A stretch of DNA of 64,000 nucleotides from Bugula neritina (Eukaryota > Animalia > Bryozoa). The DNA lies in NCBI GenBank assembly GCA_964035545.1, contig OZ037772.1, forward strand, positions 3,377,538-3,441,537, given 5' to 3'. How positions within the stretch are numbered: the first letter of the stretch is position 1; every line of letters starts with the position of its first letter. The translations under genes and the position numbers were made by a program. Positions 38,711 to 62,973 of this stretch are shown piece by piece. The notes under the pieces are model-generated. The model was given only the letters and a program-made list of their open reading frames with translations. It was not told where the DNA came from and did no database searches.

Positions 38711-38775
38711 GGTAGTATAATAAGCGCCTCTACGGCTATGGAAGTAAGCATCTCGCAGCAACAAACTTGTCAAAA
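38711..38775 (+). mobile_element. Solo Maverick terminal fragment
   Basis: gtagtataataagcgcctctacggctatggaagtaagcatctcg (38712-38755) is identical to 41118-41161; the next ~20 bp are diverged but alignable. Confidence 0.85.
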
Positions 38776-39480: not shown

Positions 39481-40280
39481 ATACACTTGTTAGTCCAAAT
39501 AACAAAAGAGGTTAAAAATATCCTTAACATAAAATTGCAATATTACTTACTGCAGCCAGTCTATATTATCATTATTTGTATCAATTGGTCAGTTTTCTAG
39601 ACGTCCCCCCTAATATAATTATTACTGCTGCTATATCTTCTATGCTCCAATCGTCTTTAGCTGATTTTATCTTCTTGTATATCTATCTTCATTCGTCATT
39701 TATCATTCATCCTTTTTCTATTTTCAGAAATTCAGCTCCTTTTGTACCAAATCTTTTTGGCAATGGTTCAGATTTTAAGGATACCGACAATAACTGGCCA
39801 ATGAAAACCAGCGGCAGACTGACGTAGAACTCGGTTAGGTATGTTGGCAGCCAAGATAGGGATTGACGTAAGAAGGATCTGTTGTTATTGGCTCATCTTT
39901 GTATATTGTGGGCTAAATAATCAATAATTGTACAGCAATCCTTAATCTAAAAAATAACTTTAAAACTATAATATGATAAAATGTATCAGTCGATGCTTAC
40001 GTGTTGACCTTTGTAACAGGCTGATCAATGTCAAAAAATTTATTAGGCGTTTGAAACATTATATCATCTACATGTTGGTGTAAACAAATATTTACACATA
40101 TGTGTATCTCTATTTATGAACAGCATCTGCTATATGTTTCAGCTTTTTTATTCATTCCCATTTGTTCATCAATTAGTGTTTTATTTCAAAAGTCAATATT
40201 ACAAATTTCAACACGTGATCATGGCATGTGGTACTATCCTAACACACAATTACTTATCTAAAAGCCACACTACTAAATAA

Positions 40281-40283
<3 letters not shown>

Positions 40284-40350
<67 letters not shown>
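40284..40350. repeat. (TA)n microsatellite
   Basis: Pure run of ~33 TA units. Confidence 0.97.
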
Positions 40351-40353
<3 letters not shown>

Positions 40354-41116
40354 ATAATGCATTAAGCAATTTCTATGCAAGACCGAAATATCTAACTTAC
40401 TCAAAACTTGTACATTTGAACTTTTAACTTCACTCAATTATTGGGCCTCATGCATCATAAAACTTTTGAACGTGTTTTATATTCTTTCTTGAATGTTGTA
40501 GATAAACTATAGTCTACATACCGTGGTGGAGCAGATATAAGAATTTATAATTGCATCAACCCGTTGCAGCAGCCATCTTACTGGAAATCTCAAACAAACC
40601 TCAGCATCGCCAAAGCCATATTTTAGCGAGCTGACAGAATATCTCAGAGATATAACTTGTAAAGTATAGAAGTAAGAATTAAACACAAAGGGCAGTATAT
40701 GTATAATCATGCCTTCCATCAAGGCTATAGCTTTTTTAAAGAATTTTCTGAGAATAATGATACAAATATTAACACTTCAAGCTTAACAACTTATGACATA
40801 ACGGTTACATTGAATATTATTTTCTAGATATCATATTCGTCTGTGTTTTAGTACTGCCAAGGTTATCACTCAGCACTAAATGGACAAAATTGCTTCTTTT
40901 AATTAAGAGACTATGCTGGAGAAAGGCCATTATATATGAATTGAATAAAGAAACTAGTAAATTATTCAGTGTTATAATTAAACTTTGAACGAGCTTTGCT
41001 CTGATTGGTTTTTTCTGACTTATTGTAATATATATCTATATCTAGCCAGGGTTTTGTGCCTACATAGTAATGTACACGTTCTATGATAAGAGTAATTGAA
41101 TGCAAATATAAATGAA

Positions 41117-41296
41117 AGTAGTATAATAAGCGCCTCTACGGCTATGGAAGTAAGCATCTCGTATCGGTCAATTTGTCAACATAGCGTAGACTCTATGGCT
41201 ATGGAAATTAGCATCTCGTTAACTATGTGAGCATTGTAAGCCTTAAAGTTGACAGGTGGTAGCTATTAAATTTAGCTTACAGTGAATACACCTTTT
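41117..41296 (+). repeat. Left TIR (180 bp)
   Basis: Reverse complement of 57047-57252 except two substitutions and a 26-bp deletion; contains an internal 29-bp direct repeat (41134-41162, 41191-41219). Confidence 0.95.
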
Positions 41297-41429
41297 TAAG
41301 CAATTACTGGAAGGTGGATCAATGATTAGTTTAGCTGTATATCCTTGTCACTAACTTTATAAGTAACAAAATTTACTCACTGAGCTGAGAGTTATACAGT
41401 TTGCGAGTCAAAATTTGTGTGTTTTTTGG

Positions 41430-41464
41430 TATAAAACATCACCATTCTGAAATTTACATCATTC
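41430..41464 (+). promoter_or_regulatory. TATA box plus Inr upstream of Maverick ORF1
   Basis: TATAAAA at 41430 and TCATTC (TCAKTY Inr consensus) with its A at 41461, 31 bp downstream. Confidence 0.55.
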
Positions 41465-41497
41465 ATCGTTATATGTTTTGAGCGCAAAGGTTAATCA

Positions 41498-42013
41498 ATG
41501 ATGACAGAAGTAGAAAATTTTCCCTTGCAAAATAAAGATCCTATATTTAATGAACAAGATGCAAATGTGGCTGAAGATGAGTTAGATGTGGCGAGAAAAG
41601 TTGTACATAATCGGAATACACTCATTAATAAAGTTTCGACCAGGAGAGATAATGCAAAGAATGACTGGAGCTTTTCAGAACTAAAAAAGAAACCTATCGC
41701 TATTATCCTGGTAGCACTATTTTTATCAATGAATGTAATCAACATAGTTATGAGCGGTAATGGTAGCTTTTCTGGAAAGATGTTTTCAACTAATTATACT
41801 TTAGACAGAATGTTCAATAACTGCACAAAACACTTCGAAATGACTGACAATTTAAAACTAGCTGTTTGCAACACTAAAGTTCACGGGGATTTTATAACTA
41901 TACAATATTTTTTCTTGAATGGTAATATGTCTCAGAGTGATGCGTCTTCACCATCTAAGCTGTTAACAGTTTTGACTAAACACATTTTAGAAAATAATTA
42001 TTACGGAATGTAA
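41498..42013 (+). CDS. Maverick accessory ORF1, predicted type II single-pass membrane glycoprotein (171 aa)
   Basis: Intact ORF. KKK precedes hydrophobic PIAIILVALFLSMNVINIVM; four N-X-S/T sequons follow (NGS, NYT, NCT, NMS). TATA/Inr upstream and AATAAA at 42043. Confidence 0.7.
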   Translation: MMTEVENFPLQNKDPIFNEQDANVAEDELDVARKVVHNRNTLINKVSTRRDNAKNDWSFSELKKKPIAIILVALFLSMNVINIVMSGNGSFSGKMFSTNYTLDRMFNNCTKHFEMTDNLKLAVCNTKVHGDFITIQYFFLNGNMSQSDASSPSKLLTVLTKHILENNYYGM

Positions 42014-42640
42014 TGTTTTTCTGTATACAACTCATAGTTTATAATAAAATGTTAAATGGAAACAAAAAACATGTCTTATGGTCCAACTCTATTTGCAACT
42101 CCATTTTTAAACTTATAACTTGACACAATTTTTCTGAAACTCAAAAAGCAGAAAAAAGATAATTAACCTTATGCTAATGATGTTTGAAACTTTGACAAAG
42201 TAAAAATTAATATTAGCAAAAATTAGGAGGTGACACAGCGGTTTCCAATTTAATCAATGGGAAGTAAAACATAATAAAATCTTGTATAACCTGATATAAT
42301 ATCGCCCAGTAATTAAACCCTAGATGGGTGGATTGTATTTAAAATTTAACAACTCAATTCCTCATTATAGTTAGAAATCGGAAAATTTTTCAGCTAAGAT
42401 GGATGACACGGCAATTTCTAATTTACGGATGGGAAGTGTCCTAGTTGAAATTTAAATACATATGCAACTGTTAAAACACGTATCACCTACGGAAACTGAT
42501 ATAATATTGCTTACGTGAGTAAACCTTAAACCGGCAGATTACAATTAAAATGTTACCACCCAACTCCCTATAATAAAAAAGAGGAAAACTTTTAGTTAAG
42601 ATAAATTTCATTTACGTAGGAATAAATTACAAAATCTCAG

Positions 42641-42676
42641 TATATAAAAGCCTCGAAAAACTTCTATGTTTCATCG
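42641..42676 (+). promoter_or_regulatory. TATA box and Inr-like site of the 3-exon Maverick gene
   Basis: TATATAAAAG at 42641, TCA 30 bp downstream, good-context ACCATGG with ATG at 42702. Confidence 0.55.
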
Positions 42677-42701
42677 CATCCCAAACCATACAGCAAACAC
42701 C

Positions 42702-44014
42702 ATGGGAGATTTAGTAAAGAAGTTAGAAGCTGAACTACTACAACTCAGAAGAAAAGTGGGAGAAACGAGTACTAGTTCCAGTACAGTTGAACCACTCAAA
42801 GCCTTAAAGCCTTCTAAAAGAAAAAAGTAAGTAATAATATATTTCTTTTGGATATCTCACCACTAACCTGTTAGAATATTATTAACATGAGAATGATTTT
42901 AGTTTACTATAGTGTTAGCTTTCTATAACTATGCTAACCACTAACCTGTTAGAATATTATTAACACGAGAATGATTTTAGTTTACTATAGTGTTAGCTTT
43001 CTATAATTATGCTAACCTTTTTTATCAGCTAAAAGTAGCATTTTATTCATTACAATAATATTATTTTAGTGAATCTAAGTCTGGTGAATCAAAGCGTAAG
43101 AAACCTGCATCAATTCCAAAGGTGGATGAGTCGACTAGCGAGCCATCTGTATCTACCAGCGTGAGGTTAGTAGAATATCGTAAATCATCAATCATCTGTA
43201 AGACTCACAATTAATTGTATTCACTTGACAAACTATAAACAAATAAACAGACGTTTGTCGTGTAATAAATTATATTACGTAGAATAAGTTACATATTATA
43301 AAACATAGTAATAGATCCCTCTTTTTTAGAGCTACTACCACTCCTTCCTCTATGACGTTGTCTATTCCATCCGCTAGTTCCTCTACTGGTACAACTGTTA
43401 CTACAAGTGATGATGCTGCCACTGCTGCTACCGCTGTCGATCAGAGCAAAACACCTGCAAATGAAGAAGGTTGCTATTTAGTCCCTCTTAATTATGATCA
43501 ATCACAATTATCCTACTACACTGACAATGACAAGATAATACCTACATTTAATCATTCGCGTAAATTCTTTTTTAAATCTGATGAATTTATAGGTGAATTA
43601 AAAATATACGAGTCGAAAATTCCCAACAGTGGGCCATGTTTATATGTGAAAAAATCTAAAAATCTAGAACTTTTTAAAACAAAGCTAGCTAAAATTTTTG
43701 AAAAAAAAGTTAAGTTTTACGGTAAAAGTGAAAATGCATCATTGCTCGGATGTTATGTTGACGTGGTCAGAAACATGGAAGACGAAATTTGCGTAAATGC
43801 TGTAGTCAATGGACAACCTGTGTTATTAAATGTACAACAACTGTATGGAAAAGTGGGAAAATTAACATGCGTGTTGAGAAGCGGTGTGATAAAAAAAGTA
43901 AACGAGGACTTATTTTGGTCACTAAATGTGACCGAAATCAAACTAGACGACATATCACCGGATGAATATAATTATTTTAAACGATCGGAGCCGATCATAA
44001 AATTTTTAGGCTGA
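42702..44014 (+). CDS. Spliced Maverick gene, 301 aa (exons 42702-42826, 43070-43165, 43330-44014); putative ssDNA-binding protein
   Basis: GTAAGT and GTTAGT donors and TTTTAG acceptors, both introns phase 2, join into one 906-nt frame. N-terminal coiled segment, basic NLS-like KRK..KRKKP, S/T-rich linker, beta-rich C-terminal domain. Function is inference. Confidence 0.75.
42858..43017. repeat. ~78-bp tandem duplication inside intron 1 of the spliced gene
   Basis: accactaacctgttagaatat...tgttagctttctataa[c/t]tatgctaacc occurs twice. Confidence 0.85.
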
Positions 44015-44124
44015 CGGACTGACACTGACTCTCTAATATAAATATGTTGTATTTTTTGGTGATGGGGAAATATTTTATGTTGGTGAATGGAATACTTTTA
44101 TGCGTATTATTGTTTAAAATATTG

Positions 44125-45682
44125 TTACAATATATCTCAATATATAATCAGTAAAAAGAAATTCAATACTATCTCTGCCACTATTAAACACAAAATGTAT
44201 AAAAGCGAGTTGTTAATACACAACATCTATATATTACAATCTATCTCAATATATACTCAATGAAAAAAAATTCAATACTATCTCTGCCACTATTAAACAC
44301 AAAATGTATAAAAGCGAGTTGTTAATATACAACATCTATATATTACAATCTATCTCAATATATACTCAATGAAAAGAAATTCAATACTAGCACTGCTACT
44401 ATTGAATGTATAAAAGCGAGTTGTTAATATACAACATCTATATATTACAATCTATCTCAATATATACTCAGTGAAAAGAAATTCAATACTAGCACCGCTA
44501 CTATTGAATGTATAAAAACGAGTTAATATACAACATCTATATATTACAATCTATCTCAATATATACTCAATGAAAAGAAATTCAATACTAGCACTGCTAC
44601 TATTGAATGTATAAAAGCGAGTTGTTAATATACAACATCTATATATTACAATCTATCTCAATATATACTCAATGAAAAGAAATTCAATACTATCTCTGCC
44701 ACTATTAAACCCAAAATGTATAAAAGCGAGTTGTTAATATACAATATCTATATACTTCAATCTATCTCAATATATACTCAATGAAAAGAAACTCAATACT
44801 ATATCTCTGCCACTATTAAACCCAAAATGTATAAAAGCGAGTTGTTAATATACAATATCTATATACTTCAATCTATCTCAATATATACTCGATGAAAAGA
44901 AATTCAATACTATCTCTGCCACTATTAAACCCAAAATGTATAAAAGCGAGTTGTTAATATACAATATCTATATACTTCAATCTATCTCAATATATACTCA
45001 ATGAAAAGAAATTCAATACTATCTCTGCCACTATTAAACCCAAAATGTATAAAAGCGAGTTGTTAATATACAATATCTATATACTTCAATCTATCTCAAT
45101 ATATACTCGATGAAAAGAAATTCAATACTATCTCTGCCACTATTAAACCCAAAATGTATAAAAGCGAGTTGTTAATATACAACATCTATATATTACAATC
45201 TATCTCAATATATACTCGATGAAAAGAAATTCAATACTATCTCTGCCACTATTAAACACAAAATGTATAAAAGCGAGTTGTTAATATACAATATCTATAT
45301 ACTTCAATCTATTTCAATATATACTCGATGAAAAGAAACTCAATACTATCTCTGCCACTATTAAACACAAAATGTATAAAAGCGAGTTGTTAATATACAA
45401 TATCTATATACTTCAATCTATTTCAATATATACTCGATGAAAAGAAACTCAATACTATCTCTGCCACTATTATACACAAAATGTATAAAAGCGAGTTGTT
45501 AATATACAATATCTATATACTTCAATCTATCTCAATATATACTCGATGAAAAGAAATTCAATACTATCTCTGCCACTATTAAACACAAAATGTATAAAAG
45601 CGAGTTGTTAATATACAATATCTATATACTTCAATCTATTTCAATTTATTTCAATATATCTTAATATATACTCGATGAAAAA
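44125..45682. repeat. Internal tandem array, 14 units of 99-111 bp (mode 109 bp) plus partial ends
   Basis: TGTATAAAA recurs at 44196, 44305, 44407, 44509, 44608, 44717, 44828, 44937 and then every ~109 bp to ~45591. Confidence 0.95.
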
Positions 45683-45890
45683 GTTTAAAACACTGTTCTT
45701 CTGGCTCTGATGAAGAGTGTAGTAAACCTGACAATTCTATCTGATAATGCCACTATATGTCAAGTATATACATTTATGAGTGTATCTATTTACATATTAA
45801 TAAACAATATCTCTATTTGAAGTAATTTTCTTTGATCCTTGCATCTCTATCAAGGTGGTTAAAAGAATAATTTATACTTCAATGTTTTAG

Positions 45891-48800
45891 AGAAATTCAA
45901 GTGCCACATATGTGGAAAAAGTTATAACCACAGGCAAAGTTTGAGCAGGCACCAAAGTATCCACAAAAAAAGATGTGATCAATGTAAACGGTTGTATGCA
46001 CCGTGGAAAACAAATCACCGATGTCATAACACGGTAATTTATCTACTGAGTGATACGATACGATATGAATATGATCATACTACATATACTATTACAACAA
46101 ACTCAAAGCTAACTAATCAATGGTAATCTTGGTAAATTTTAGAATACAAACTCAAACGGAGCAGAGAGAAGGTCAAACAAAAAGCCTCAAACCACATTCA
46201 GTGATGATATTGAACGCTATCAGTACAAAGGCATTTACGAAGAGGAAACAAATGCTCTATTGAGAAAAAACTGGTCAGCTATAAGAACGTACAACAGAAA
46301 AGGGAAATATTGTAGTGTCTACAATCGATTGATAAAAGACAATGACATTATTTCAACTTTAAACAATAAAGAAGTGAAATTAATATTTCATGAACAAACA
46401 TTGAAATTCAAATGCAATGCTTCAATTGGTTTTATCCTTTTGAATCAAAATGAGGAAAAGTTGAGATACTTTCATGCTAGCATGGGTGTTGATAAACTTT
46501 TTGCCTCGCCAAAGCTAATAGAGAATTTACAAGATTTCAATCAACTTGTGAAAGAAATGACAGAAAAAGATTTCATAGAGAAAGCAACTCAAAACAGGCC
46601 AAACACTTCGTGGAGTGTTCACAAAATAACAAATATTACATTGTATGTATTTCCTATACCAGATCACAATATCGGAAGCCCTATATCTCCATCTGAGAGA
46701 ACAAAACAAAACAAAGCAATTATAACAGCTAGCACTGATACAACTGGAAGACTGTATGAAGACAACTTATGTCTATTTAGAGCTCTAGCTTACTCAAAGG
46801 GGCAGCAGAGTACTTTAACACAGTCTACGAAACATTATTATGAAATGTACTTGAATGGTATGAACAAACTGAATCAAGATTTTACAGGAGTGCCTTTATC
46901 AGACCTCAGATTTGCCGAGCGAATACTGAACTGTTCTATTAATGTGTACACCTTGGAATACAATACAGGGAAAGAAGCTAATGCAAAGCTTATGTACAGA
47001 GCCACTACCAATTACAAACACAAACTAAACCTACATCTAGAGGAATCACATTTCAGTTGGATAAAAAACATCTCTCTTTACACAAAGTCATACAAATGTA
47101 CATTTTGTAACAAGCTAATGAAATCAGTCAGAGCGTTGAATAGTCATAACACAGTATGTACAGCTGGTGAAACAAACCTTGTGTATCCCTACGGGGTGTA
47201 TACTCCGTCTCGATCTATTTTCGAAAAGCTTGAAGATGTTCACATCACAGTTGATGAAAATAGACGACATTATCCGTACTTTGCTGTGTTTGATTGCGAA
47301 ACGATGATGTCTTCGATTGATTTACCTGCAAACACAAATACAATACACTATGAAAACAAACACAAGTTGGCTTGTATAAGTTTATGCTCAAACGTATCTG
47401 GCTATACACAACCAGTGAATTTCATGAATTCTGGAAATGAATACGAGCTGGTTGTGAAAATGATGGATTTCCTTACAAAGCTGTCTGAAGTATGCTACCA
47501 GAGATTGCTTGTTAGATACAATGATGTGTTTAAACAACTACGTGAAAAAGCTGACGAGTGTATCAAGAAAGAAATTGAAGCTAGTTGTAATAACAAAGCA
47601 GTGAACAATGTCAAAAAAAAGTTTGAATCACTAGAAAGTCAACTCCACTGTTATTTGAAAGACTTGATGATCTTGTCTTTCAACGGCGCTGTCTATGACA
47701 TTCCATTGATTCGACAACATATGCTACGGTATCTATTAGAACAAAACCAAAAAGTTTTGTTTACAGCTAAAAAAGGAAACAAATACATGTGTATTCAAAC
47801 GGAAAAATTAAGATTTCTAGACGTGCTCAATTTCCTTGCTCCAGGGTTTTCGTACTCTGATTATCTAAAAGCTATGGGAGTTGAAGGGGAAAAATTCTTC
47901 TGGCCTTATGACATATTCACATCTATGGAAGTGCTAGACAGAACAGAGTTCCCCGCTCATGAAGAGTTTTACAGTAAACTGAAAGGTAAAAACATATCCG
48001 TTCAGGAGTATGAAAAATGCAAAGAAATATGGGTGCAGAAAGGAATGAAAACATTAAAAGACTTACTAGAGTACTACAATAACGAAGATGTCAGACACTT
48101 TATACCAGCATTAGAAAAGCAAAATGAATTTTACAAATCATGCAATCTTGATTTCAAGTCAGCTATATCTATACCAGGACTAGCGATTCAATATTTATTT
48201 CAATTAAAAGACCCAGAAGCGCCAATCTTTCTGTTTGGTGATAAGTTTAAAGACATTCACCAACTTATCAAATCAAACATTAGAGGTGGTTTATCAATTG
48301 TGTTCTCAAGGTATCAAGAAGCTGGCGCAACAAAGATTAAACCTGAATACTTTGGTGATCAAGCCAAAACTACGCAAACATGTGTAGGGTATGATGCGAC
48401 AAGTTGATATTTGAGTTGCCTAGTGAAAGATATGCCCACAGGAGCCTTTGTAAGAAGGCGGAGAGAAAATAGCTTTAGAATAGAAAAAAGCTACTATTCG
48501 GGTGAAAAAGCTACAGTATGGCTAAAATACATGTCAAAGCTGCTCGGAGTCAAAATTCAACACAAGTTTAATAGCACCGAATGTCGAATAGGTGGACGAA
48601 ACATACCAGTCGATGGATACGCTCTGGCGAGTGATGGTAGTGAACTAGTGTTCAACTACTCAGGATGCTGGTTTCACGGACATCTATGCGACTATTGTCC
48701 AAATGGAAAGTTTAATAACAAAGAAAAAGATTTACAAAATCAAATAGACACATACAATACGCTGAAATATTTCCAAGATTTGGGTTACAGAGTCTACCAT

Positions 48801-50293
48801 ACTTGGGAGTGTGAATTTGATAATTTGAAAAAGGAAAACAGTGATGTCAGTGAGTTCTGCTCAAATCTGGACTTCATTGTTGATTCAAGATACGTAATAT
48901 CAGAAAGCAAAATACTAGAAGAAATCAAAAATGGTTCAATGTTTGGAATGGCTGAAGTTGATATAGAAACACCTGAAGACTTGAAAACAATATTTGCTGA
49001 ATATCAACCTATACAAAAAAATGTACTGATATCAAGGGATGACATAGGCCCACACATGAAACAATTTGCAGAACGAAATGGTTTACTAAAAAAGCCATCA
49101 CGTACTTTAATCAGTAGCTATTTCGGGAACAAAATCCTTTTGTCCACCCCGCTACTGCAATGGTACCTACAACACGGCTTAGTGGTTACAAAAGTATATC
49201 AAGTAATTCAATACAAGCCATCAAAATGCTTCAAGCTGTTTGGTGAAAAGGTAATGGAGGCTAGGAGAGCTGGTGACCTCGATTCCTCAAAGAAGATTAT
49301 ATCGGATTCATGCAAACTAATAGGTATTTAGTAAATATTGACATGTTTAAACATAGCACTTATTCAATGGTTATTAATATGCAAATCACTTAAGCATCTA
49401 GCAAGAGCGATAACTTTTGCATTGAATAATTACTCAATATATTTCAAAATAATCCACTTCGCTATATTTCAGGAAACTCTGCGTATGGCCGAACACTAGT
49501 CAACCTGGAGAGTCACACTGATATCATATATTGTGATGCTGAAGAGACAAACATCTCAAGACTGGTAAACAATCCTAGATTTAACAGCTTACAAGAAATT
49601 GATTCTCAACTAGTTGAAATTGAATCACGAAAAGCTAAGATTAGACTCAATGTACCAGTACAAATTGGCTTTCAAGTATTAGAGTATGCAAAGCTAGCCA
49701 TGTTGAAATTCTATTACGATTTCTTGTTAAAGTTTCTATCTCTAGACAGTTTTGCTTTGATTCAAATGGACACTGACTCAATGTATTTAGCTCTAAGTGA
49801 AAAAACTTTGTACCTAGCGGTTAAAAGTGATATGAGAAATGAATTTGAACAAGAACACACTAGTTGGATGTGTAGAGAATATTGCGATGAACACAAGTCA
49901 CAATATTTTCAATGTATGTTTAACGGGCAAACCTGGAATCCATTAGACTGTTGTAAAGCTAGTGCCAAGTTCCACAAAAGATCTTTGGGGTTGTTTCACT
50001 GCGAAAATGTCTCCCGAGGTGTTGTAGCGCTTTGCTCCAAATGTTACTATTGTTTCGGGGAAGAACCTAAATACAGTTCAAAAGGTGTCAGTAAATTGCA
50101 CAACAACTATACCGAAAAAGATTACTTCGATGTATTGATAAATCAGAAAATTGCTTACGGTACGAACAAGGGTTTTCGAGTAAAAGGTGAAGAAATATTC
50201 ACGTACGTTCAAAATCGAAAAGCTTTAAATTATTTTTACGGAAAGAGAATTGTGTCACAAGATCACGTGACAACCAAACCTACTTTACTGTAA
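45891..50293 (+). pseudogene. polB: Protein-primed family B DNA polymerase (pPolB), ~1380 aa, spliced (exons 45891-46033, 46143-49323, 49473-50293; first exon unresolved), with one in-frame TGA at 48405-48407
   Basis: C2H2 finger FKCHICGKSYNHRQSLSRHQSIH; vOTU-like DNLCLFRALA..SHF; Exo I FDCET, Exo II FNGAVYD, Exo III YNNEDV; motif A YDATS*Y; motif B KLIG/NSAYG across the last intron; motif C DTDS; terminal YGKRIV. Confidence 0.93.
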
Positions 50294-50374
50294 AAAAACT
50301 GTGTTCAGTTAGCGCGTTCAGTTAATTGGTATTTCACTGTTCGGTTGATAGGTCGCATCAATCAATATTCTACG

Positions 50375-50773
50375 ATGGAAAATTTATACCTATTACAGAA
50401 AAACGCTTATAATTATATATGGTACAAGCTTTCGAAAATGAGTAGACAACATTACGTTAACTATTGTATAACACAAACCGTTTTGGACATGTACAATAAA
50501 CATCAAAATTGGAGTGAGGAAGAAATAAATGAATTGGTCGAACTAGCCGAGGATATGTACGAGACTAACGGTTACGTTCAGTTTTGTAAAGTGGCAAAAG
50601 ATTTGACTGATCCAAATATCTCAGCTATTCGCTTAGAAACAATATTTTTCTTGTGCGTGCAAATTTGCAAAATGTATATCGAGGCTGGAGAACACTTCGC
50701 AGTGAAATATTTTATTCAACAGATCCAATGGAACTTGGGAATAGCTCTCGAGAAACAAAACAATGTACAATAG
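50375..50773 (+). CDS. Bcl-2-like protein (132 aa), putative viral apoptosis regulator
   Basis: BH4-like AYNYIWYKLSK (cf. Bcl-2 KYIHYKLSQ) and BH1-like YVQFCKVAKDLTDPNISAIRLETIFFLCVQIC (cf. Bcl-xL [32 protein letters not shown]). All-helical pattern; TCAGTT Inr motifs at 50305 and 50318; AATAAA at 50921. Confidence 0.6.
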   Translation: MENLYLLQKNAYNYIWYKLSKMSRQHYVNYCITQTVLDMYNKHQNWSEEEINELVELAEDMYETNGYVQFCKVAKDLTDPNISAIRLETIFFLCVQICKMYIEAGEHFAVKYFIQQIQWNLGIALEKQNNVQ

Positions 50774-50800
50774 TTTATTTTGTATATAATTGTGTATATT

Positions 50801-50858
50801 TGCCTAAACTTGCCTAAACATGCCTAAACATGCCTAAACATGCCTGAACTTGCCTAAA
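50801..50858. repeat. 10-bp tandem repeat TGCCTAAAC[A/T], 6 copies
   Basis: Read directly, between the Bcl-2-like ORF and the ATPase. Confidence 0.9.
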
Positions 50859-50950
50859 TCTATTTATACTTTTTTATGCCTATTAATATTTTTGTACATT
50901 ACTTGATACAATTATTTGGGAATAAACTCTCGGAATATACAGTTAACATC

Positions 50951-51601
50951 ATGAGCTTACCTTTCTACCATACATTTTCAGCAATTGTAGCTGGTCCTTC
51001 AAGGGCTGGTAAAACTCAGTGGGTAAGGAAATTGATTACCAACAGTCATACAATGATATCACCTCCACCTGAAAAAATAATATATTGTTATAGTGAGTGG
51101 CAGCCACTGTTTAGCTCATACAACAACGTTGAGTTTCATCAAGGTGTTATCGATATACAAGAATTAAACAAAAATATAAAAAACTTGATAATATTTGATG
51201 ATTTAATGAGTGAAATAGATCAGAATATTGAAAACATATTTACTAAGCACAGTCACCATCGCAACATAAGCGTAATATTTATAACACAGAATCTGTTTCA
51301 AGACAACTCTCACATGAGAACAATGTCTCGAAGCGCTTCTTATGTTGTTGTATTTAAAAACCCTAGAGACGTGAACCAGATATCCTATTTGGCAAGACAA
51401 ATGTTTCCTAAAAACCAGAGTAATTTTGTTGTTGAAGCGTTTCGAGACGCCACTTCTGTCCCCTTTGGGTACTTGGTTATAGACTACAGGCAAGAGACAG
51501 AAGACTATTTGCGCATTAGAACAGGTGTATTTCCGGGTGAGAAAACCTATATCTATTTGTCAAACAGAAACGCTACTTCATTACAAAGAAATGCAGCTTG
51601 A
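50951..51601 (+). CDS. A32/FtsK-like genome packaging ATPase (216 aa from the likely ATG)
   Basis: Walker A GPSRAGKT, Walker B LIIFDD, SHHRNISVIFITQNLF, FKNPRD, typical of Polinton ATPases. Confidence 0.93.
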   Translation: MSLPFYHTFSAIVAGPSRAGKTQWVRKLITNSHTMISPPPEKIIYCYSEWQPLFSSYNNVEFHQGVIDIQELNKNIKNLIIFDDLMSEIDQNIENIFTKHSHHRNISVIFITQNLFQDNSHMRTMSRSASYVVVFKNPRDVNQISYLARQMFPKNQSNFVVEAFRDATSVPFGYLVIDYRQETEDYLRIRTGVFPGEKTYIYLSNRNATSLQRNAA

Positions 51602-51615
51602 AGCTAACATAAATC

Positions 51616-51966
51616 ATGACCGCTAGAATTAAAAAACATGCCAAGACTCTAAGTTATTTAGCTGAATGTGACAAACACAACTGTAAAGCAATCATCAACG
51701 CAGCGGGTAGTGAACTGTTGAACTGTTTCTCAGATATTTGCTACAACGTATTAAAAGGCAAGGTGTCATTGTCACCTACTGAAGAAAACAATTTACGTAA
51801 ATACAAAAATATTTTAAGAAAGATTGCTGATAAAAAGAGTACACTGAAAACTAAAAAAACACTGGTACAGAAAGGAGGGTTTCTCTCGGCTCTTTTAGGA
51901 CCACTAATAGGAAGTGTTCTAGCACCACTAGCGAAAGGAATATTCAGCGGTTTTAGAAAAAGATGA
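51616..51966 (+). CDS. Conserved small basic Maverick protein (116 aa) with QKGG/FL motif and C-terminal amphipathic helix
   Basis: ELLNCFSDICYNVLKGKVSL..LRKIA..KK.LVQKGGFLSALL pattern and position after the ATPase match a known Maverick core ORF. Confidence 0.8.
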   Translation: MTARIKKHAKTLSYLAECDKHNCKAIINAAGSELLNCFSDICYNVLKGKVSLSPTEENNLRKYKNILRKIADKKSTLKTKKTLVQKGGFLSALLGPLIGSVLAPLAKGIFSGFRKR

Positions 51967-52688
51967 ATTCGCAAAGCGCTAGAAAATTCTTATTAGTGGA
52001 TGCCGCGGATCTAAAACACAACTCATTTGTAAATGCTGATGTCAGCAAAAATAATGATTATCAACAAGTCGAGAGAAACAAACCTTTGATTACTAAAGAA
52101 CTATTTGCCGTAGATAAGCTAATGAGTGAAATCTTAAATGACAACACGCTATCAGAAAATGAGAAAGTAACTGCTTATAACAACGCGTTGACTAATTATC
52201 AAGAGTTAAAAACTACTACTTATAAGAAAATATCTAGCACAAGGTTGCCTACTTTATCAAAGAATAGTGAACCACAACTAAAAGAAACAGAAAGTCTTAC
52301 ATCTTATAACCCACTACTAGCTATCCCTCAAAGATTTAAAACAAAGGCGAGTCAACTTTGGGATATACTGAAAAAAGATGGTAAAGTTTCTGTAAATGAT
52401 GCGGGGCAGGTAACTATTAACGGCAACCAACTACGCGGAAGCAATTTATCTGATCTATTAAATCTTGCGGTTAATAGTCAACTGAAAGGTAAAACATTGG
52501 AAGGGTGGAAAGAATTTAGACAAGTATTAATTGATTACAATGTACCCAAACTACTCATTAATCAAAACGTTATCGAAGAGAAATCTAAAAGTAGAAGAGA
52601 GTCTAGTAAATTGTCATCAGGCGAGTGGGATCCATACGATGGCAAGGCGAAAACGAAAAAAGCAAAATCCAGACTCCAGCTATACTGA
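51963..52688 (+). CDS. Conserved Maverick protein of unknown function (241 aa)
   Basis: MSEILND..LSENEKV..Y..AL..Y and GQVTING..GSNLSDLL..GWKEF motifs; ATGA overlap with the upstream gene; lies directly before the integrase. Confidence 0.8.
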   Translation: MNSQSARKFLLVDAADLKHNSFVNADVSKNNDYQQVERNKPLITKELFAVDKLMSEILNDNTLSENEKVTAYNNALTNYQELKTTTYKKISSTRLPTLSKNSEPQLKETESLTSYNPLLAIPQRFKTKASQLWDILKKDGKVSVNDAGQVTINGNQLRGSNLSDLLNLAVNSQLKGKTLEGWKEFRQVLIDYNVPKLLINQNVIEEKSKSRRESSKLSSGEWDPYDGKAKTKKAKSRLQLY

Positions 52689-53766
52689 TAAACTAATTCG
52701 AGACACCTATTTCAATATTTCTAAACCAGCCGGATTTGGTAGTAAAGCAAAATTATACAAATCATTAAAAGGCAAAGTAAGCAAGGGTGCAATTGATAGA
52801 TGGCTTGAAAAAACTGACAGCTATAACCTACATAAACCTTTGCGAAAAAACTTTCCCAGACGAAAGTATATTGTATCAGGTATTAATGCCATGTGGCAAA
52901 TTGATTTAACAGATCTCCAACAGTTTTCATCCGAAAATAATGGATTCAAGTATATACTATTAAGCATTGACACATTCAGTCGTAAAGCCTACGGTGTACC
53001 ACTCAAAACTAAATCTGGTTTAGAAGTGAGTAGAGCTATGAGGGAGATTATAGAAAACGAAAACAACAACACTCCACCAGAAATGATTTTATCAGATAGA
53101 GGCAAAGAATTCTTTAACCCTCAATTTAAAGCATTAATGAAAGAATATAACATAAACCACTTTTCATCCAACAATCAAGAAATTAAAGCATCTATGGTTG
53201 AAAGACTGCAAAGAACACTAAAGGCTAAATTGTTTAAATATTTTACTCATCAAAACAGTCACAGATATCTTGACATTCTCAATGATCTAATATCATCATA
53301 CAATAACTCGAAACACTCGGCTCATAACTCAACACCTAATGATGTGACAGTTAACAATCAAGAAGAAATTTGGCATAGACTATACACAGATAGTCAGAGT
53401 GGTCAAACTAACAAACTAAAATACAATGTTGGAGATCTCGTTAGAATATCGAAATATAGTACAGTATTTAAAAAAGGATACCTTCCTTCTTGGAGCGAAG
53501 AAATCTTTACCATAGCGAAAATCCACACTACTAATCCTCCAGTGTATTCTCTCGCGGATGACAGCGGTGATCAGCTAGAAGGAACATGGTATGAACCGGA
53601 ATTGCAGAAAGTAAACACCAAGAGCAACACCTATAAAATAGAGTCAATTGTTGGTCAGCGTACTGTAAATGGTAAAAAACAATTTCTTGTAAGGTGGGCT
53701 GGATATCCGCCAAGTTTTGACTCGTATGTTGATAAAAGAGATGTAATTTTTAACTATAAGAATTAG
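52639..53766 (+). CDS. int: Retroviral-like (rve) DDE integrase with C-terminal chromodomain (375 aa from the likely ATG)
   Basis: WQIDLTD, SDRGKEF and VERLQRTLK supply D-D-E; YNNSKH; KYNVGDLVRI; chromodomain YKIESIV..KKQFLVRWAGYPPSFDSYV. Confidence 0.95.
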   Translation: MARRKRKKQNPDSSYTDKLIRDTYFNISKPAGFGSKAKLYKSLKGKVSKGAIDRWLEKTDSYNLHKPLRKNFPRRKYIVSGINAMWQIDLTDLQQFSSENNGFKYILLSIDTFSRKAYGVPLKTKSGLEVSRAMREIIENENNNTPPEMILSDRGKEFFNPQFKALMKEYNINHFSSNNQEIKASMVERLQRTLKAKLFKYFTHQNSHRYLDILNDLISSYNNSKHSAHNSTPNDVTVNNQEEIWHRLYTDSQSGQTNKLKYNVGDLVRISKYSTVFKKGYLPSWSEEIFTIAKIHTTNPPVYSLADDSGDQLEGTWYEPELQKVNTKSNTYKIESIVGQRTVNGKKQFLVRWAGYPPSFDSYVDKRDVIFNYKN

Positions 53767-53799
53767 ATAATAAACTTATATGTTGTCACTCTTACAAAG

Positions 53800-54570
53800 A
53801 TGCGCGTTGTTTTACCTAGTAATGCTTCGTTGAAGCATTTTCCAAAAAATAGTCTTTCAGTATACACAGTTCAATTGCCTCAAAGTTTAGATTTTACAGA
53901 TGGCTCTTACGAGATCGGATTGAGTGAGATACAATTTTATAAATCATGGTTCAATGTGAAACAGTGCAGCATAACCTTAAAAGTAAATGAAGCTGAAGAA
54001 ACAGTGCATCTAGATGATGGTTACTACAAATCAGATAAAAAGCTAATACAATCTATCAATCAAGCAATAAATGACCAGTGTTTAAATCTGAAAGTAAAAT
54101 TTAATTTCTATTACAACGATGTCAATAAGAATTTTTATGTCATTGCTGAAAATGTTAGAGGTTGCTCTATAGACATCACATACTCACCATCTCTTGAGAA
54201 AATACTTAATGTACAGGAAGAAAAAATGGAGATAAAATCAATGACCGATGGCACAATTTTGGTCAAGTACAATACTCCAATAAGATTACATACAATATTT
54301 AACCTGATGGTGTATACAGATGTAGCAGAATCTAGTATTGTTGGAGATACTCAGGCTCAACTACTAAGAGTTGTAGGAGTCGAGGATGGTCATTGGAGGT
54401 TGCAGTCCACTAACTTTAACAATGTACAGTACTGCAAAATAAATAAAACGCATGTTTCGAGTGTATCAATTTATATATACACGGATTACGGTGAAAGAGT
54501 ACCATTCACGCATGGACGTACAGTGGTAACGGTAGATATTCGAAAAGTTAAACCTATAAACCTAATATGA
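53800..54570 (+). CDS. Minor capsid protein (penton, single jelly roll; PX)
   Basis: VLPSNAS..FPKNSLS.YTVQLP..YEIGLSEI and VYTDVAESSIVGDTQAQLLRVV motifs. Confidence 0.88.
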   Translation: MRVVLPSNASLKHFPKNSLSVYTVQLPQSLDFTDGSYEIGLSEIQFYKSWFNVKQCSITLKVNEAEETVHLDDGYYKSDKKLIQSINQAINDQCLNLKVKFNFYYNDVNKNFYVIAENVRGCSIDITYSPSLEKILNVQEEKMEIKSMTDGTILVKYNTPIRLHTIFNLMVYTDVAESSIVGDTQAQLLRVVGVEDGHWRLQSTNFNNVQYCKINKTHVSSVSIYIYTDYGERVPFTHGRTVVTVDIRKVKPINLI

Positions 54571-54998
54571 GAATAATTCCATTCGATTGTGATGCCGCAT
54601 CAAATAGCTATAGACAGTTATATGAACAATCATGAAATGGAATGATTCCAATATTTTCAGGAGAAAAATATCAAACAGGATACGGTTTAGGGAGCATATT
54701 TGGTAACATACTCAAAGCAGCATTGCCTGTTGTAAAACAAGGTGTAAAAAGTTTAGGAAAGACAGCAATAAATACTGGTCTAAACATTGCCAGAGATAGT
54801 TTATCCGGTAAACCATTCAGAGAGTCAATTAAAGATAATGTCAACAGCGCGGCTGGAGAGGTTATTACTAAAGGTATTACATACGTCACCAACAGAAATC
54901 GAAATAAAAAAAGGAAGCGTCAGACTAACAGAGTTACTTCTTCCAAGTCTTCAAAGGTGAAAAGACGTAGGGTTACTAAACGCGATATCTTTTCATAG
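54567..54998 (+). pseudogene. Small basic core-like Maverick protein (143 codons) interrupted by TGA at 54633-54635
   Basis: ATG overlaps the minor capsid stop (ATGA). The frame reads MRIIPF..YRQLYEQS*NGMIPIFSGEKYQTGYGLGSIF; the family pattern Q-x-G-x-G predicts Gly at the stop. Arg/Lys-rich tail ending RDIFS. Confidence 0.75.
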
Positions 54999-55009
54999 AA
55001 TACTATACT

Positions 55010-56320
55010 ATGAGTTTCATAATGGAACATAGCTGCCTCGCTGGCAAACCCGAATTAGATTTATTTTCTACACTACCTACTCAAGCATCAATCGAAGAAG
55101 GATATCACGTAGAACATATGCCCACAACCTCACTGAATGATGAGGGACCTATAAAGTTCTCAATCTCTGGTGATTCGAACAACTACCTTGACCTCAGTTC
55201 AAGCTATCTATTATTAGAGGTGAAAATAACAAAAGCTGACGGTACGGATCTCGATGCTCAAGGTGATGCGGCTCCTATAAACCTTTTGGGTCACACATTA
55301 TTTCAACAAGTAGAAATTATGCTAAATGATGTAGTTATTTCCAACGCTTCTAATCTCTACCACTACAGAGCTCTTATAGAAACTTTACTAAGTTACTCCG
55401 ATGAAGCTAAAAAGTCACAACTATCAATGTCACTCTACTCAAAGGATACACCCGGAAAAATGGATCACATTGGTGGTGATAATGAAGGCTTGGAAGCTAG
55501 AAGGCGAATTACGGGGCAGAGTAAAACTGTGCAGTTAATTGTTAGACCGCACGCTGACATATTCTTTCAAAGACGATTCATTTTAAATGGAGTAGACATG
55601 AAATTAAAGTTTGTGAGGAATCACAACAGCTTAGTGCTAATGGCTGGTGAAAACTCTACTTGCAAACTAAAAATCCTAAACGCATCTTTTTTCCTTCGAA
55701 AAGTTAAAATCAATAGCGGAATACAATTAAAGCACATTGAAAATTTAGACAAGAAACTATTGCCAGCCGTTTATCCTATCAGAAGAGTTGATATGAAGTC
55801 ATTCAATATCGCATTGGGTTCATTGTCTTGGAACGAAGAAAATTTATTTCACGGTATTCTGCCTAAGAGGATAGTTATAGGTATTGTAAACGCTGGTGCA
55901 TTCGAAGGCGCGTACAATTTGAATCCTTTCAACTTTCAGCACAAACATTTAAAATATACAAACCTAGTCGTTGACGGGAAACAAGTACCTCAGAAGGCAT
56001 TGGTTTCAGACTACACAAATCATAATACTCTAAGAAACTATTTTACGCTCTTGGAATCAACGGGAAAGGTGTTCAACAATGGCGGAATAGATATAGATAG
56101 AGAGGAATACGAGAAAGGTTACAGTCTAATGGCCTTTGATTTAACTCCTGACCTAGATTTGAGCACTTGCTTTCATTTGATGAAGCGAGGAACAATAAGA
56201 TTAGAGCTAAAGTTTTCTCAGGCTCTTGACACACCCGTTAATGTGATTGTCTATTCCGAATTTGACTCTGGTATAAAAATTGATAAGAATAGAGCGGTAC
56301 TTACAAATTTCTACGCGTGA
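55010..56320 (+). CDS. Major capsid protein (double jelly roll; PY), 436 aa
   Basis: KPELDLFS..PTQ.SIE, YLDLSSS, YHYRALIETLL, NPFNFQH, GYSLMAFDLTPD and G.IRLELKF motifs of Maverick major capsid proteins. Confidence 0.93.
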   Translation: MSFIMEHSCLAGKPELDLFSTLPTQASIEEGYHVEHMPTTSLNDEGPIKFSISGDSNNYLDLSSSYLLLEVKITKADGTDLDAQGDAAPINLLGHTLFQQVEIMLNDVVISNASNLYHYRALIETLLSYSDEAKKSQLSMSLYSKDTPGKMDHIGGDNEGLEARRRITGQSKTVQLIVRPHADIFFQRRFILNGVDMKLKFVRNHNSLVLMAGENSTCKLKILNASFFLRKVKINSGIQLKHIENLDKKLLPAVYPIRRVDMKSFNIALGSLSWNEENLFHGILPKRIVIGIVNAGAFEGAYNLNPFNFQHKHLKYTNLVVDGKQVPQKALVSDYTNHNTLRNYFTLLESTGKVFNNGGIDIDREEYEKGYSLMAFDLTPDLDLSTCFHLMKRGTIRLELKFSQALDTPVNVIVYSEFDSGIKIDKNRAVLTNFYA

Positions 56321-56859
56321 TGAATTCTAAAGAAATATATTCCATTCTTGAGAACGATGAGTGGGTGAAAAAGATGAACTTCATCGGTGTATTTCCAGTC
56401 GATAGAATACCTAGTAGTAGTTTGACGGATTATCCTTGCTGTGGAGTTGTAAACACTAAACCTCACAATCATCCGGGAGAGCACTGGGTGATGTTTCTAA
56501 AGACAGAAAATAACACAGGAGTTTATTTTGACTCTTTTGGAAGTGGTCTTTACAACATGCCAGAGGTTGCGGCTATATTTGATTCAGTAGACTCTTGGCA
56601 ATTTAGTAGCACTCAGCTACAATCTGTATTTTCTACAGTTTGCGGACAATACTGTATTTTTGTGTTAACGCATTTAGCCAGAGGTTTCTCACTAGAACAC
56701 ATTATATCTTTAATAAATGATTGTTGTGATACATACGCAAATGATGCTTTTATATTTAATTACATTAATCAAAAATATAGTAATTTTTTAAATAAAGAAC
56801 TGGAAATTGTAGACTTACCTTTTATTTTTGAACAAGCTTCTTATCCTGTTAAAATTTAA
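56320..56859 (+). CDS. Adenain-like cysteine maturation protease (179 aa)
   Basis: PGEHW (His), YFDSFG (Asp), QLQS..STVCGQYC (Gln, Cys); TGATG overlap with the major capsid gene; AATAAA at 56898. Confidence 0.93.
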   Translation: MNSKEIYSILENDEWVKKMNFIGVFPVDRIPSSSLTDYPCCGVVNTKPHNHPGEHWVMFLKTENNTGVYFDSFGSGLYNMPEVAAIFDSVDSWQFSSTQLQSVFSTVCGQYCIFVLTHLARGFSLEHIISLINDCCDTYANDAFIFNYINQKYSNFLNKELEIVDLPFIFEQASYPVKI

Positions 56860-57046
56860 AGCTGTAATATTCTATTATGACATTTTTTGTTGAAGAAAAT
56901 AAACTCATGGTGAAAAGAAATCTCTTTTTGGTTATTGAATATTATACGGAGTGTAGAATTTACCAAAGTGACAACAGTGATATAACGAGGGTAACTAATC
57001 ATAGATCAATGTTTTAGTACGTGAGATTCTGACTACGTAGTTAGTT

Positions 57047-57252
57047 AAAAGGTGTATTCACCGTAAGCTAAATTTAATAGCTACCACCTGTCAACTTTAA
57101 GGCTTACAATGCTAATTCATCAATAACAAATACAATGGTCACATAGTTAACGAGATGCTAATTTCCATAGCCATAGAGTCTACGCTATGTTGACAAATTG
57201 GCCGATACGAGATGCTTACTTCCATAGCCGTAGAGGCGCTTATTATACTACT
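57047..57252 (-). repeat. Right TIR (206 bp)
   Basis: Inverted copy of 41117-41296 with 26 extra bp; ends ACTACT followed by TSD AATGAA. Confidence 0.95.
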
Positions 57253-57859
57253 AATGAACATAATTTCTTTGATTTTAGTCTAGTTATGTTATAAGCATTA
57301 GATAACTTGTTTTTGAGACAGCGGGGTGAGAGCTTTGTAAAAAAATTAGCCTAATTAGAATTTCTGTAATAGATAAACGTTACTAGCTCCTTAACAATTC
57401 AATTAAAGTTGAATAAAAATATACATCAAATTACCAGTTCAAAGTAAAAGACTTTGAAGGCTAATAACTTACTACGAAGATTTAAACCAAATAACAAGAG
57501 ACTAAATCCAAAATCAATTTATAATTATTCTTAACATATGACAAGTATGAATGTTACAGCTGCTCTTGTACAATGTACTTGTACAGCTCTTACTCATCCT
57601 AGTATGTTTAACTGGCATAGCATCCTTGTCTTTCTAGGGACTCCGTACATCGTTGGAGTGCAGAGGTCATCTCCAACAAAAGACTTTGAATTAGAGTGGA
57701 TAAATAAAAGTAAGCGCTTGTAATGTTTTTCAACTCTAATTAAAGTTCCCAAAATGTTATTGTTGGTAAGTTTCAGGCTCAAGAATAATCTTGTATTTTC
57801 TTATTAAAGAACAAAAAGAGAAAAAAAGAAAAAAATACGGGTCCTAAGTCGCAAAAACC

Positions 57860-58265: not shown

Positions 58266-58870
58266 TGACACCGGAATCCCACAAACAAACGTAGCAAAGT
58301 TAAAAGTGTAACATTTGATGGCAATAGAAGTCTGCCTATAGTAGTAGATGCTACGTTATCATAAAGTGTTGGCTCACAAGAGTTTCTCATCGTGAGCATT
58401 AAAGTAGGCATTATATTTGTGTGAATTTTATCCAAGTTATCATGTAGTTTTCTTATCATACAATACAACTTATTGGGATGTGGTAGTAGAAAAATATAAA
58501 AAATATATTTTAGTTTAGGAGGAAAAACTGAAAAGTAACCCACCGAAGATGAGGTCTAGCGGAATAATAAGAAAATTCTCACAACAAAGTAATTAGCAAT
58601 GAAGGGTCAGAGGTCAAGCATACACCAAGTCTAGCAAATTTATTATCTTCAACAGCCTCTCAATGAAACCATGCCATGCCTAGTTCATGTCATAGCAACA
58701 TACAACTGACAGGGTGGGGGGGGAGCATGACTAGCAGAGACTTAGCTATTATAAACTAGGTTAGGAGAACATAACTCTGAAAATAAAACAATGAGCTGTG
58801 TAATTATGTATGTTGATTTTCCAGGTACAGCAGGTGTAGAGCTCAAAGGGTTACCAAGTAACTGATTTTA

Positions 58871-59112
58871 ACAGAGTAACATGAAGGTATATACAGAGTA
58901 ACATGAAGGTATATACAGAGTAACATGAAGGTATATACAGAGTAACATGAAAGTATATACAGAGTAACATGAAAGTATATACAGAGTAACATGAAGGTAT
59001 ATACAGAGTAACATGAAGGTATATACAGAGTAACATGAAGGTATATACAGAGTAACATGAAGATATATACAGAGTAACATGAAGGTATATACAGAGTAAC
59101 ATGAAGGTATAT
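58871..59112. repeat. 22-bp minisatellite (ACAGAGTAACATGAAGGTATAT), 11 copies
   Basis: Read directly. Confidence 0.95.
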
Positions 59113-59130
59113 TATTATTATTTACAGTAT

Positions 59131-59600
59131 TGTTTCATAGTTGAATCGTACAAGTACTTAGTTGCTTACGTGCAATAGCAATTTTATAGCTATCTACTTA
59201 TGTGTGCTACTTCATGTTTTTTGTTCTTAGTTCAGTTGCTTGTAGTAGAGCTCTGTCATATTATCACTCTAACAGGTTATGGGCCCAGAGCGCTATCACA
59301 AACACTAGTTACAGTAGTATAAAAAGACCAAATGGCTGGAATTATTGAAAACAAGCTGATGAGTAAAAATTACAGCACTTGGAAGTCTAAACTCAAGCAT
59401 TTGCTGATTGCTAAGGAACTATGGGAATATTTTGATGGCTCCATAACTGAACCTGAAGAATCAGCTAGTGCTCTACTAGACTGACTATACAAAGATATCA
59501 AGCAAGACTATGTCAATTATTGTACTCGCGATAATTTGCTATATCCCATAACCAGCTGCACAAAACCAAAACAAGCAAGGGGCACTTTACAAAAACACAG
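59131..59600 (+). mobile_element. Copia LTR retrotransposon 5' remnant: putative short LTR (TG..CA, ~59131-59274), primer-binding site 59275-59288, decayed gag
   Basis: ..AACA|GGTTATGGGCCCAG is the copia-type primer site that uses a half initiator tRNA-Met. gag reads MAGIIENKLMSKNYSTWKSKLKHLLIAKELWEYFDGSITEP. The LTR 5' boundary is tentative. Confidence 0.8.
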
Positions 59601-60034
59601 AACCAGAAAGCAAGTCAGGAAACTGACAGTGCCTTCCTCCTACCAAAAAGGGAGACAACCAACTACTAACCAAAAAAATACTTAAACCGACACTTCATCT
59701 AAATTTGTCAAAATAAAAAATAGTTGTTGTAAACATGGCAACTGCACAAGATGGTGCAGAGTTGTCCACCCAATATCTTTTCAAACAACAAGAAGTATAA
59801 TGCGTGCAAAATTTTTAAGTTGATGCAGATTAAAAAAATTTATTTATGGGTTAAATAACAACCAATTGGTTTAAGCTTTTTCAAATATAAGTATATTTCA
59901 ATGATAGTAAAATGAATTTTACGTAAAATATATATTGTACGAAAATAAACAAATATAGCAGCTAACTGGGAAGGAAGCATCTAACTGAGATGATAACATG
60001 TTATATCAAATCACCTTATTGTGTATGATTTTAG

Positions 60035-62540: not shown

Positions 62541-62973
62541 ACCAATGACTTTTTTATATCATTTTATTATTAAATTAGAAGAGTTGAAGGCTTCTAATGA
62601 AAAGCTAAATTTAATATTTACTTATATTTTGTACTAGTTAATAGAACATACAATTAGTGCTGACAGTCTTGATTTTATTGTAAATTATATCTCATGAGCG
62701 TTTGCAAAAAAAGATACTTTTGCACTGTTTTTGTTCTGTTGTTTTTCATTTTTCTTAACAAAATAAAATAGCCATTACAGAGATCGGTGTAAGATCGCAA
62801 ACCTTTCACCAATGTTGTATGAAAACCATTTATGCAACGTTTATATGCAACACAACGTTTATGGAACGTCGGTGAAAGTTTTGCGATAAACGTTTGTTTT
62901 AAAAGTTGTATATAGTACAAAAATGTGTCGACATTTAAACGTTTATTAAACAATTTGTAAATTGTTGGTGGAG

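Follow-up and report, generated by a model that had tools for sequence, protein, structure and literature searches.

A predicted Bcl-2-fold gene within the replication module of a bryozoan Maverick element

An intact open reading frame (ORF) that lies between the polymerase-like gene and the packaging ATPase gene of a bryozoan Maverick/Polinton element is a true gene of that element and is predicted to encode a small, soluble protein with the Bcl-2 fold. The element was found in a 64,000-nt stretch of DNA, referred to here as the window. On the evidence of its predicted structure and of sequence comparisons across its family, the protein very probably has the Bcl-2 fold and is homologous to the Bcl-2 family. 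The preferred reading of its role is that of a soluble pro-survival Bcl-2 mimic with an anti-apoptotic mechanism, to which we give a probability of roughly 0.55; we infer its expression, its binding of BH3 helices and its anti-apoptotic effect. Bcl2 homologs in animal Mavericks have been known since 2021, and the ORF is a divergent addition to them.

The Maverick element

The features of the element and its flanks, in window coordinates, are as follows.

41111-41116, unstranded: left target-site duplication AATGAA, read directly
41117-57252, plus strand: whole Maverick/Polinton element, 16,136 bp, delimited by terminal inverted repeats (TIRs), a 6-bp duplication and the termini
41117-41296, unstranded: left TIR, with arms 41117-41238 and 41230-41296
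46260-50293, plus strand: polymerase-like gene, broken in this copy, of pPolB2 type with a VSR endonuclease insertion (VSR domain; PMC10748475)
48645-48833, plus strand: VSR endonuclease domain (family profile against PDB 1odg/1vsr/1cw0, E 2e-5)
50305-50323, plus strand: two TCAGTT (Inr-like) motifs, 70 and 57 nt before the ATG
50375-50773, plus strand: predicted Bcl-2-fold ORF, 132 aa, intact, single exon
50801-50858, unstranded: 5.8 tandem copies of a 10-bp unit, in the spacer that separates the Bcl-2-fold ORF from the ATPase
50876-51601, plus strand: packaging ATPase, adenovirus IVa2-like (PF02456, 22.0 bits against a cut-off of 21)
50921-50926, plus strand: AATAAA, candidate poly(A) signal, 148 nt beyond the ORF stop
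52531-53766, plus strand: retroviral-type integrase with a C-terminal chromodomain (rve PF00665, Chromo)
55010-56320, plus strand: candidate major capsid protein (weak Capsid_N match, E 0.024; the position fits Maverick architecture)
56317-56859, plus strand: candidate adenain-like maturation protease (weak Peptidase_C5 match, E 0.015)
57047-57252, unstranded: right TIR, pairing with the left end
57253-57258, unstranded: right target-site duplication AATGAA, matching the left hexamer

Every recognised gene of the element is on the plus strand. The TIRs are ~180-200 nt long and 98-99% complementary between the two ends, and the 6-bp target-site duplication is perfect on both flanks. The near-identity of the repeats and the intact duplication suggest that the element is a young insertion. 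Its termini read AGTAGT at 41117-41122 and ACTACT at 57247-57252. This (AGT)2/(ACT)2 end motif, reported as conserved in vertebrate Mavericks (PMC8097293), is shared by the bryozoan element, whose host is a probable lophotrochozoan. Among the genes downstream of the ORF, the integrase matches rve PF00665 at 53.8 bits and Chromo at 28.2 bits, each above its Pfam cut-off, and the ATPase additionally gives a weak Pfam match to AAA_14. The preliminary description of this DNA had placed the ORF inside a Maverick, between pPolB and the ATPase. That placement is confirmed by the TIRs, the AATGAA duplication, the ATPase gene downstream with the integrase further on, and the VSR-bearing polymerase-like gene upstream.

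Does the upstream gene deserve the label 'pPolB'? No polymerase match was obtained for the gene at 46260-50293 in Pfam, PHROGs or PDB. Its VSR domain is detected by the family profile, while single-sequence matches to VSR at the same residues are weaker. Polymerases with an inserted VSR domain make up the pPolB2 class, known from Polintons found in a marine nematode and in marine molluscs (PMC10748475). Because the embedded VSR domain matches this class, the 'pPolB' label appears reasonable and the element can be placed in the marine pPolB2-VSR lineage, which the domain at 48645-48833 would extend to a bryozoan. The gene has many unnamed relatives of 940-1,100 aa, and a DTDS motif is present in its C-terminal part. 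There is one premature in-frame stop at a point where intact relatives read through, and the DTDS-bearing part lies in another frame, so that the frame must change at least once or an intron has gone unrecognised. Judged by its reading frame, the polymerase-like gene is broken in this Maverick copy.

Several repeats accompany the element. Upstream of the polymerase-like gene, a 109-bp tandem repeat is present in 14.2 copies at 95% identity (44128-45649), and a 78-bp unit occurs twice at 97% identity in the left accessory region (42859-43017). Just to the left of the element there is a 46-nt AT-rich palindrome with adjacent arms (40268-40359). No further copies of the element or protein-coding remnants were found in the 64,000-nt window except for a 62-nt TIR-like fragment at 38712-38773. 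This fragment lies 2.3 kb to the left of the element, is 89-90% identical to the Maverick TIR and may be the remnant of another insertion.

The ORF and its flanking signals

The start ATG of the ORF is at 50375 and its stop codon ends at 50773. The coordinates and translation bear out the intact 132-aa frame reported earlier, and the peptide strings quoted from it (YNYIWYKLSK and F.KVAKDL.DPNISAIRL.TIF.L) are all found in the translation. The protein is acidic (pI 5.1). Its peak 19-residue hydropathy of 1.43 is centred on residue 91, and its C-terminus is polar. The hydropathy scan, with its internal maximum, agrees with the earlier statement that the protein has no C-terminal membrane anchor. 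Such an anchor is common in the Bcl-2 family but is not universal. The composition of the ORF (GC 0.338, GC3 0.386) is similar to that of the other genes of the element.

The preliminary description also credited the gene with its own Inr motifs and a downstream AATAAA. These motifs are present, but as signals they amount to no more than chance. The TCAGTT copies, at 50305-50310 and 50318-50323, fall within the 81-nt spacer that follows the polymerase-like gene; in the whole window the motif is found 58 times against 55 +/- 7.5 expected. Upstream of the element's gene starts, W-CAGT occurs 7 times in 1,200 nt against ~3.5 expected, about twice the background. The AATAAA falls between the first and second ATG of the ATPase ORF, and the window holds 173 copies against 138 +/- 12 expected, two of them within the Bcl-2-fold ORF itself. 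In this AT-rich DNA, the motifs are consistent with an independent transcription unit, yet they are no evidence for one. The tandem repeat in the spacer before the ATPase has the unit TGCCTAAACA; it may serve in regulation or as a kind of terminator, or have arisen simply by slippage.

A family of unnamed proteins

As a single query, the ORF gave no usable match in Pfam, PDB sequences or PHROGs. A word-indexed search returned only near-identical fragments from JGI metagenomes (87-97% identity) and a fragment from Bugula neritina. Near-identical sister copies are known only as protein fragments of 79-94 aa, which are open over their called length. In an exhaustive phmmer search, 16 proteins out of 1.84 billion representatives scored E<=0.001, and about 15 of them are taken as relatives. 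A word-indexed profile search gained just one new family member, and the exact ORF protein is absent from a collection of 15 billion proteins. One candidate, a 583-aa Mycobacterium protein (P0016), was rejected as spurious, its match being made up of seven short stretches.

The relatives are all unnamed proteins from ENA, Logan or JGI assemblies. Several are full-length and collinear with the ORF, with lengths of 130-160 aa and identities of 21-44%. The first ATG of the ORF is the start that the relatives use, since N-termini align there in all 10 of the 10 relatives that have one, and the C-termini fall within ~10 residues of the ORF's own. Full-length homologs at this level of identity, with coincident N- and C-termini, put the ORF far beyond chance. 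Some family members are found on contigs of 15-21 kb, and they recur in up to 17 assemblies. The longest listed contig is 7,839 bases both for one member (P0009) and for a relative of the polymerase (P0048), and these metadata hint that the two lie on the same contig. The ORF is one of a divergent, unnamed family that is most likely carried by Mavericks of marine invertebrates within the pPolB2-VSR lineage; for the relatives, we infer the Maverick location.

Conservation was counted on an alignment of 12 sequences of the family (A2). About 35 positions hold their hydrophobic class in at least 90% of the members, the pattern of a folded helical protein. E106 is invariant (12 of 12) and G66 is found in 11 of 12, while Y30, W16, V36, W46, Y101 and I114 are each retained in at least 75%. 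The first helix, which contains the string earlier called 'BH4-like', is well conserved, with N10, N13, W16, L19 and S20 each present in at least 70% of the members. The strongest motif of the family, G105-E106-x-F108-x-V110-K111, is found where the chain turns into the last helix and is not a classical BH motif. Alignment A2 defines a family that standard annotation misses, and similar genes in other Mavericks can therefore be recognised.

The sole named relative of any gene in the element at 41117-57252 is the Bugula neritina fragment KAF6025960.1 (P0004), which is annotated as 74 aa. Its first 27 residues are 85-88% identical to ORF residues 100-126, and after residue 27 its sequence is unrelated to the Bcl-2-fold ORF. 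It is probably a gene model laid over a decayed or partial copy of the Maverick gene.

Predicted structure

AlphaFold2 with the 12-sequence alignment predicted the structure with a pLDDT of 95.9 and a pTM of 0.89, all five models reaching at least 94.9. The helices of the model span residues 4-23, 34-44, 48-63, 66-78, 84-103 and 107-131. The long helix 84-103 is central and forms the most hydrophobic stretch, with hydrophobic positions conserved by class in the family. The prediction is thus a compact all-alpha bundle around a central hydrophobic helix, within the range of six to eight helices looked for. A model from the single sequence was poor (pLDDT 61.5) and was set aside as too uncertain, yet it too ranked Bcl-xL first.

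When the alignment-based model was compared with the PDB by Foldseek, every match listed was a pro-survival member of the Bcl-2 family: Bcl-2, Bcl-xL, zebrafish NRZ, and Trichoplax trBcl-2L2 with the Bak BH3. Most of the matches listed have a TM score (TMq) of 0.65-0.72 and a probability of 1.00, with an rmsd of 3.4-4.2 A over ~125 columns; their E-values are 0.03-0.2, none of those listed being <=0.001. The comparison proposed in the preliminary description, of an AlphaFold model with known structures, has therefore come out in favour of the Bcl-2 helical bundle. A search of BFVD returned gammaherpesvirus vBcl-2, the adenovirus E1B small T-antigen, an iridovirus Bcl-2-like protein and the ASFV homolog, all at TM 0.3-0.58 and E >0.17. 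The predicted fold resembles cellular Bcl-2 more closely than it does any catalogued viral homolog.

Sequence similarity to Bcl-2

The ORF itself has no match to PF00452 at E<=10 in Pfam. The family is matched through 4 of its 12 members, at 15.7-18.0 bits and E 0.0037-0.022 against a gathering cut-off of 31.4 bits (P0005, 0.018; P0011, 0.022; P0012, 0.0044; and a fourth, P0017 by elimination, 0.0037). These weak matches share one register, in which protein residues ~45-127 fall on profile positions 2-91 of 100. The family profile compared with the PDB found dozens of chains of Bcl-xL, Bcl-2, Bcl-w and Bcl2L10 at E 0.1-2, a result that a second run reproduced, and phmmer of the relative P0012 against the PDB found no Bcl-2 entry. 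The profile matches are collinear, covering positions 13-128, or positions 46-128 against residues ~95-179 of full-length Bcl-xL chains. By these offsets, helix 84-103 falls on what we take to be alpha-5 of Bcl-xL and helix 107-131 on alpha-6.

No sequence score for membership of the Bcl-2 family attains a curated or conventional threshold. The Bcl-2-fold reading holds because the sub-threshold scores agree with one another and with the fold. Two other sets of matches were rejected. A weak BTB match (14.7 bits where the cut-off is 20.5, E 0.035) is shown by only 1 of the 12 relatives, and the designed helical repeat proteins at the top of the PDB profile search reflect a generic similarity of Glu/Lys-rich helices, each matching in several short stretches with a per-stretch E >2.

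How much of the classical BH motifs is left? The matches end at PF00452 position ~91 of 100 and at Bcl-xL residue ~179, where BH2 begins, and the ORF itself ends a few residues later. By the profile matches and the model, the BH2 signature and helices 7-8 are absent from the protein. The preliminary description recognised a BH1-like segment in which NWGR is replaced by SAIR. Residues 83-86 are indeed S-A-I-R and stand where the central helix begins. A basic residue (R or K) occupies position 86 in just 7 of the 12 members and the preceding positions are freely variable, so that an NWGR-type BH1, judged from these family counts, is not a feature of the family. The motif-level arguments advanced earlier for Bcl-2 identity are weak.

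Possible role

If the protein is a pro-survival mimic, it would be made while the Maverick is active. The helices that surround the central helix 84-103 would form a groove, in which BH3 helices from pro-death Bcl-2 relatives of the host would be bound, and with these sequestered, apoptosis would be delayed during the copying and packaging of the element DNA. The sub-threshold sequence scores, the reliance on a predicted structure, the lack of an anchor and of BH2, the absence of the BH1 signature and the broken polymerase-like gene of this Maverick are points against this reading. With BH2 and the anchor missing, a canonical groove and targeting to mitochondria are hypothetical.

The missing BH1 signature, BH2 and anchor would fit a Bcl-2 fold that has been put to another job. 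Poxviral Bcl-2-like immune antagonists are small Bcl-2-fold proteins without BH motifs, some of them without a membrane anchor. The Maverick protein might, like them, target host signalling proteins (of innate immunity, autophagy or calcium channels) and not pro-death BH3 helices, and the non-classical position of its top motif, with E106 at the turn into the last helix, favours such a target. However, in structure it is best matched by cellular pro-survival proteins that bind BH3 helices and not by poxviral ones, the BFVD entries being worse, and PF00452 similarity is still detectable in the family. Poxviral Bcl-2-like proteins are generally not known to show that sequence similarity. On balance, a different target is unlikely, though it is the strongest of the alternatives to the pro-survival mimic.

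It is very improbable that the protein is no Bcl-2 relative but a generic bundle of six helices, resembling Bcl-2 through convergence or because a shallow alignment misled the prediction. All of the E-values are sub-significant, the model draws on just 12 sequences, and designed helical repeat proteins rank above Bcl-xL in the PDB profile search. Against this, three independent lines (Pfam for individual members, the PDB profile search and Foldseek) arrive at the same family and register, and the TM scores against the PDB extend across nearly the full length of both partners, which indicates the same fold. The designed-repeat matches, by contrast, are the scattered low-scoring stretches described above. 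A pro-death, Bax/Bak-like or pore-forming member that kills or opens the cell late in the element's cycle is the least probable reading, since the C-terminal anchor is absent and no Bax, Bak or Bok is among the PDB matches listed (the PDB being biased towards Bcl-2 and Bcl-xL), even though the fold is common to pro- and anti-death members and adintoviruses bear other membrane-active and gasdermin-like accessory genes (PMC8502044).

A cell-death regulator would be of little use to a cut-and-paste transposon and is typical of DNA viruses, which keep the cell alive for replication and assembly. The Bcl-2-fold gene therefore adds descriptive support to the idea that Mavericks are, or recently were, viruses.

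Relation to known Bcl-2 proteins

With the cellular pro-survival proteins (Bcl-2 and Bcl-xL; trBcl-2L2, PDB 6yld; NRZ, PDB 6fbx), the ORF shares its predicted fold, the central hydrophobic helix and a weak collinear profile match from helix 1 to helix 6. It differs from them in its low identity of ~15%, in the lack of an NWGR-type BH1, of BH2, of the long loop between helices 1 and 2 and of the C-terminal anchor, in scoring below the Pfam cut-off, and in being an intronless 132-aa gene on a mobile element. The family is a further case in which Bcl-2 sequences have drifted, losing BH1, BH2 and the anchor, with the fold kept.

Among viruses, the homologs of herpesviruses, adenoviruses (E1B small T/19K), iridoviruses and ASFV are Bcl-2-type helical proteins like the ORF and appear among its BFVD matches, but these matches are weak and clearly worse than those to cellular proteins. 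The E1B entries score TM 0.39-0.51 at E 0.3-3, and neither the ORF nor its relatives match the Pfam families of viral Bcl-2 or E1B-19K. The ORF is not a member of the herpesvirus, adenovirus E1B-19K, iridovirus or ASFV Bcl-2 families. The poxviral antagonists gave no specific match, by structure or by sequence, in the searches made, and the ORF family differs from them in retaining traces of PF00452.

A precedent is found in adintoviruses, the animal Mavericks for which Bcl2 and IAP homologs are reported by Starrett et al. 2021 in one sentence and supplementary figures (PMC8502044). There too, an anti-apoptosis-type accessory gene is carried in an animal Maverick/adintovirus genome. The bryozoan ORF, likened to those homologs by description, differs in its place, flanked by the polymerase and ATPase genes in the replication module of a pPolB2-VSR element. 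The text of the paper makes no mention of bryozoans, and in the literature collection searched no paper links Polintons with viral Bcl-2. With the present case, the one-line adintovirus report is joined by an example from a lophotrochozoan host and from the pPolB2-VSR lineage. In planarians, giant LTR retrotransposons called Burro carry a BCL2-like motif (PMC6431247) and are likewise invertebrate mobile elements with apoptosis-regulator domains. In Burro, however, the BCL2-like domain is part of a retrotransposon polyprotein of ~4,900 aa, whereas the bryozoan case is a free-standing gene of a DNA element.

Has the gene been captured from a host? The preliminary description proposed a captured host-control gene. 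The Bcl-2 character of the protein is upheld by the model, Foldseek, the weak PF00452 matches and the collinear profile match to Bcl-xL; a recent capture is not. The ~15% identity to cellular Bcl-2, the deep divergence of the family and a GC and GC3 like those of the other element genes make recent capture unlikely, and any capture must therefore be old. It is conceivable, though tentative, that the family is a fixed core gene between polymerase and ATPase in marine-invertebrate pPolB2-VSR Mavericks, that is, an ancient Bcl-2 clade without anchor or BH2 that evolves with the elements across phyla rather than sporadic cargo. If true, Mavericks that still need the infected cell alive could be recognised directly by this sequence, and with them a viral and not purely transposon lifestyle.

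Other features of the window

To the right of the Maverick, TCAGTT occurs 15 times on the minus strand within 5.4 kb (58526-63906) against ~2 expected, and a 22-bp tandem repeat is present in 11 copies at 58871-59112. The cluster and the repeat suggest other repetitive or mobile sequence in this region. At the other end of the window, positions 6001-12000 are very AT-rich, with a GC content of 0.22-0.30 against 0.31-0.41 elsewhere in the window.
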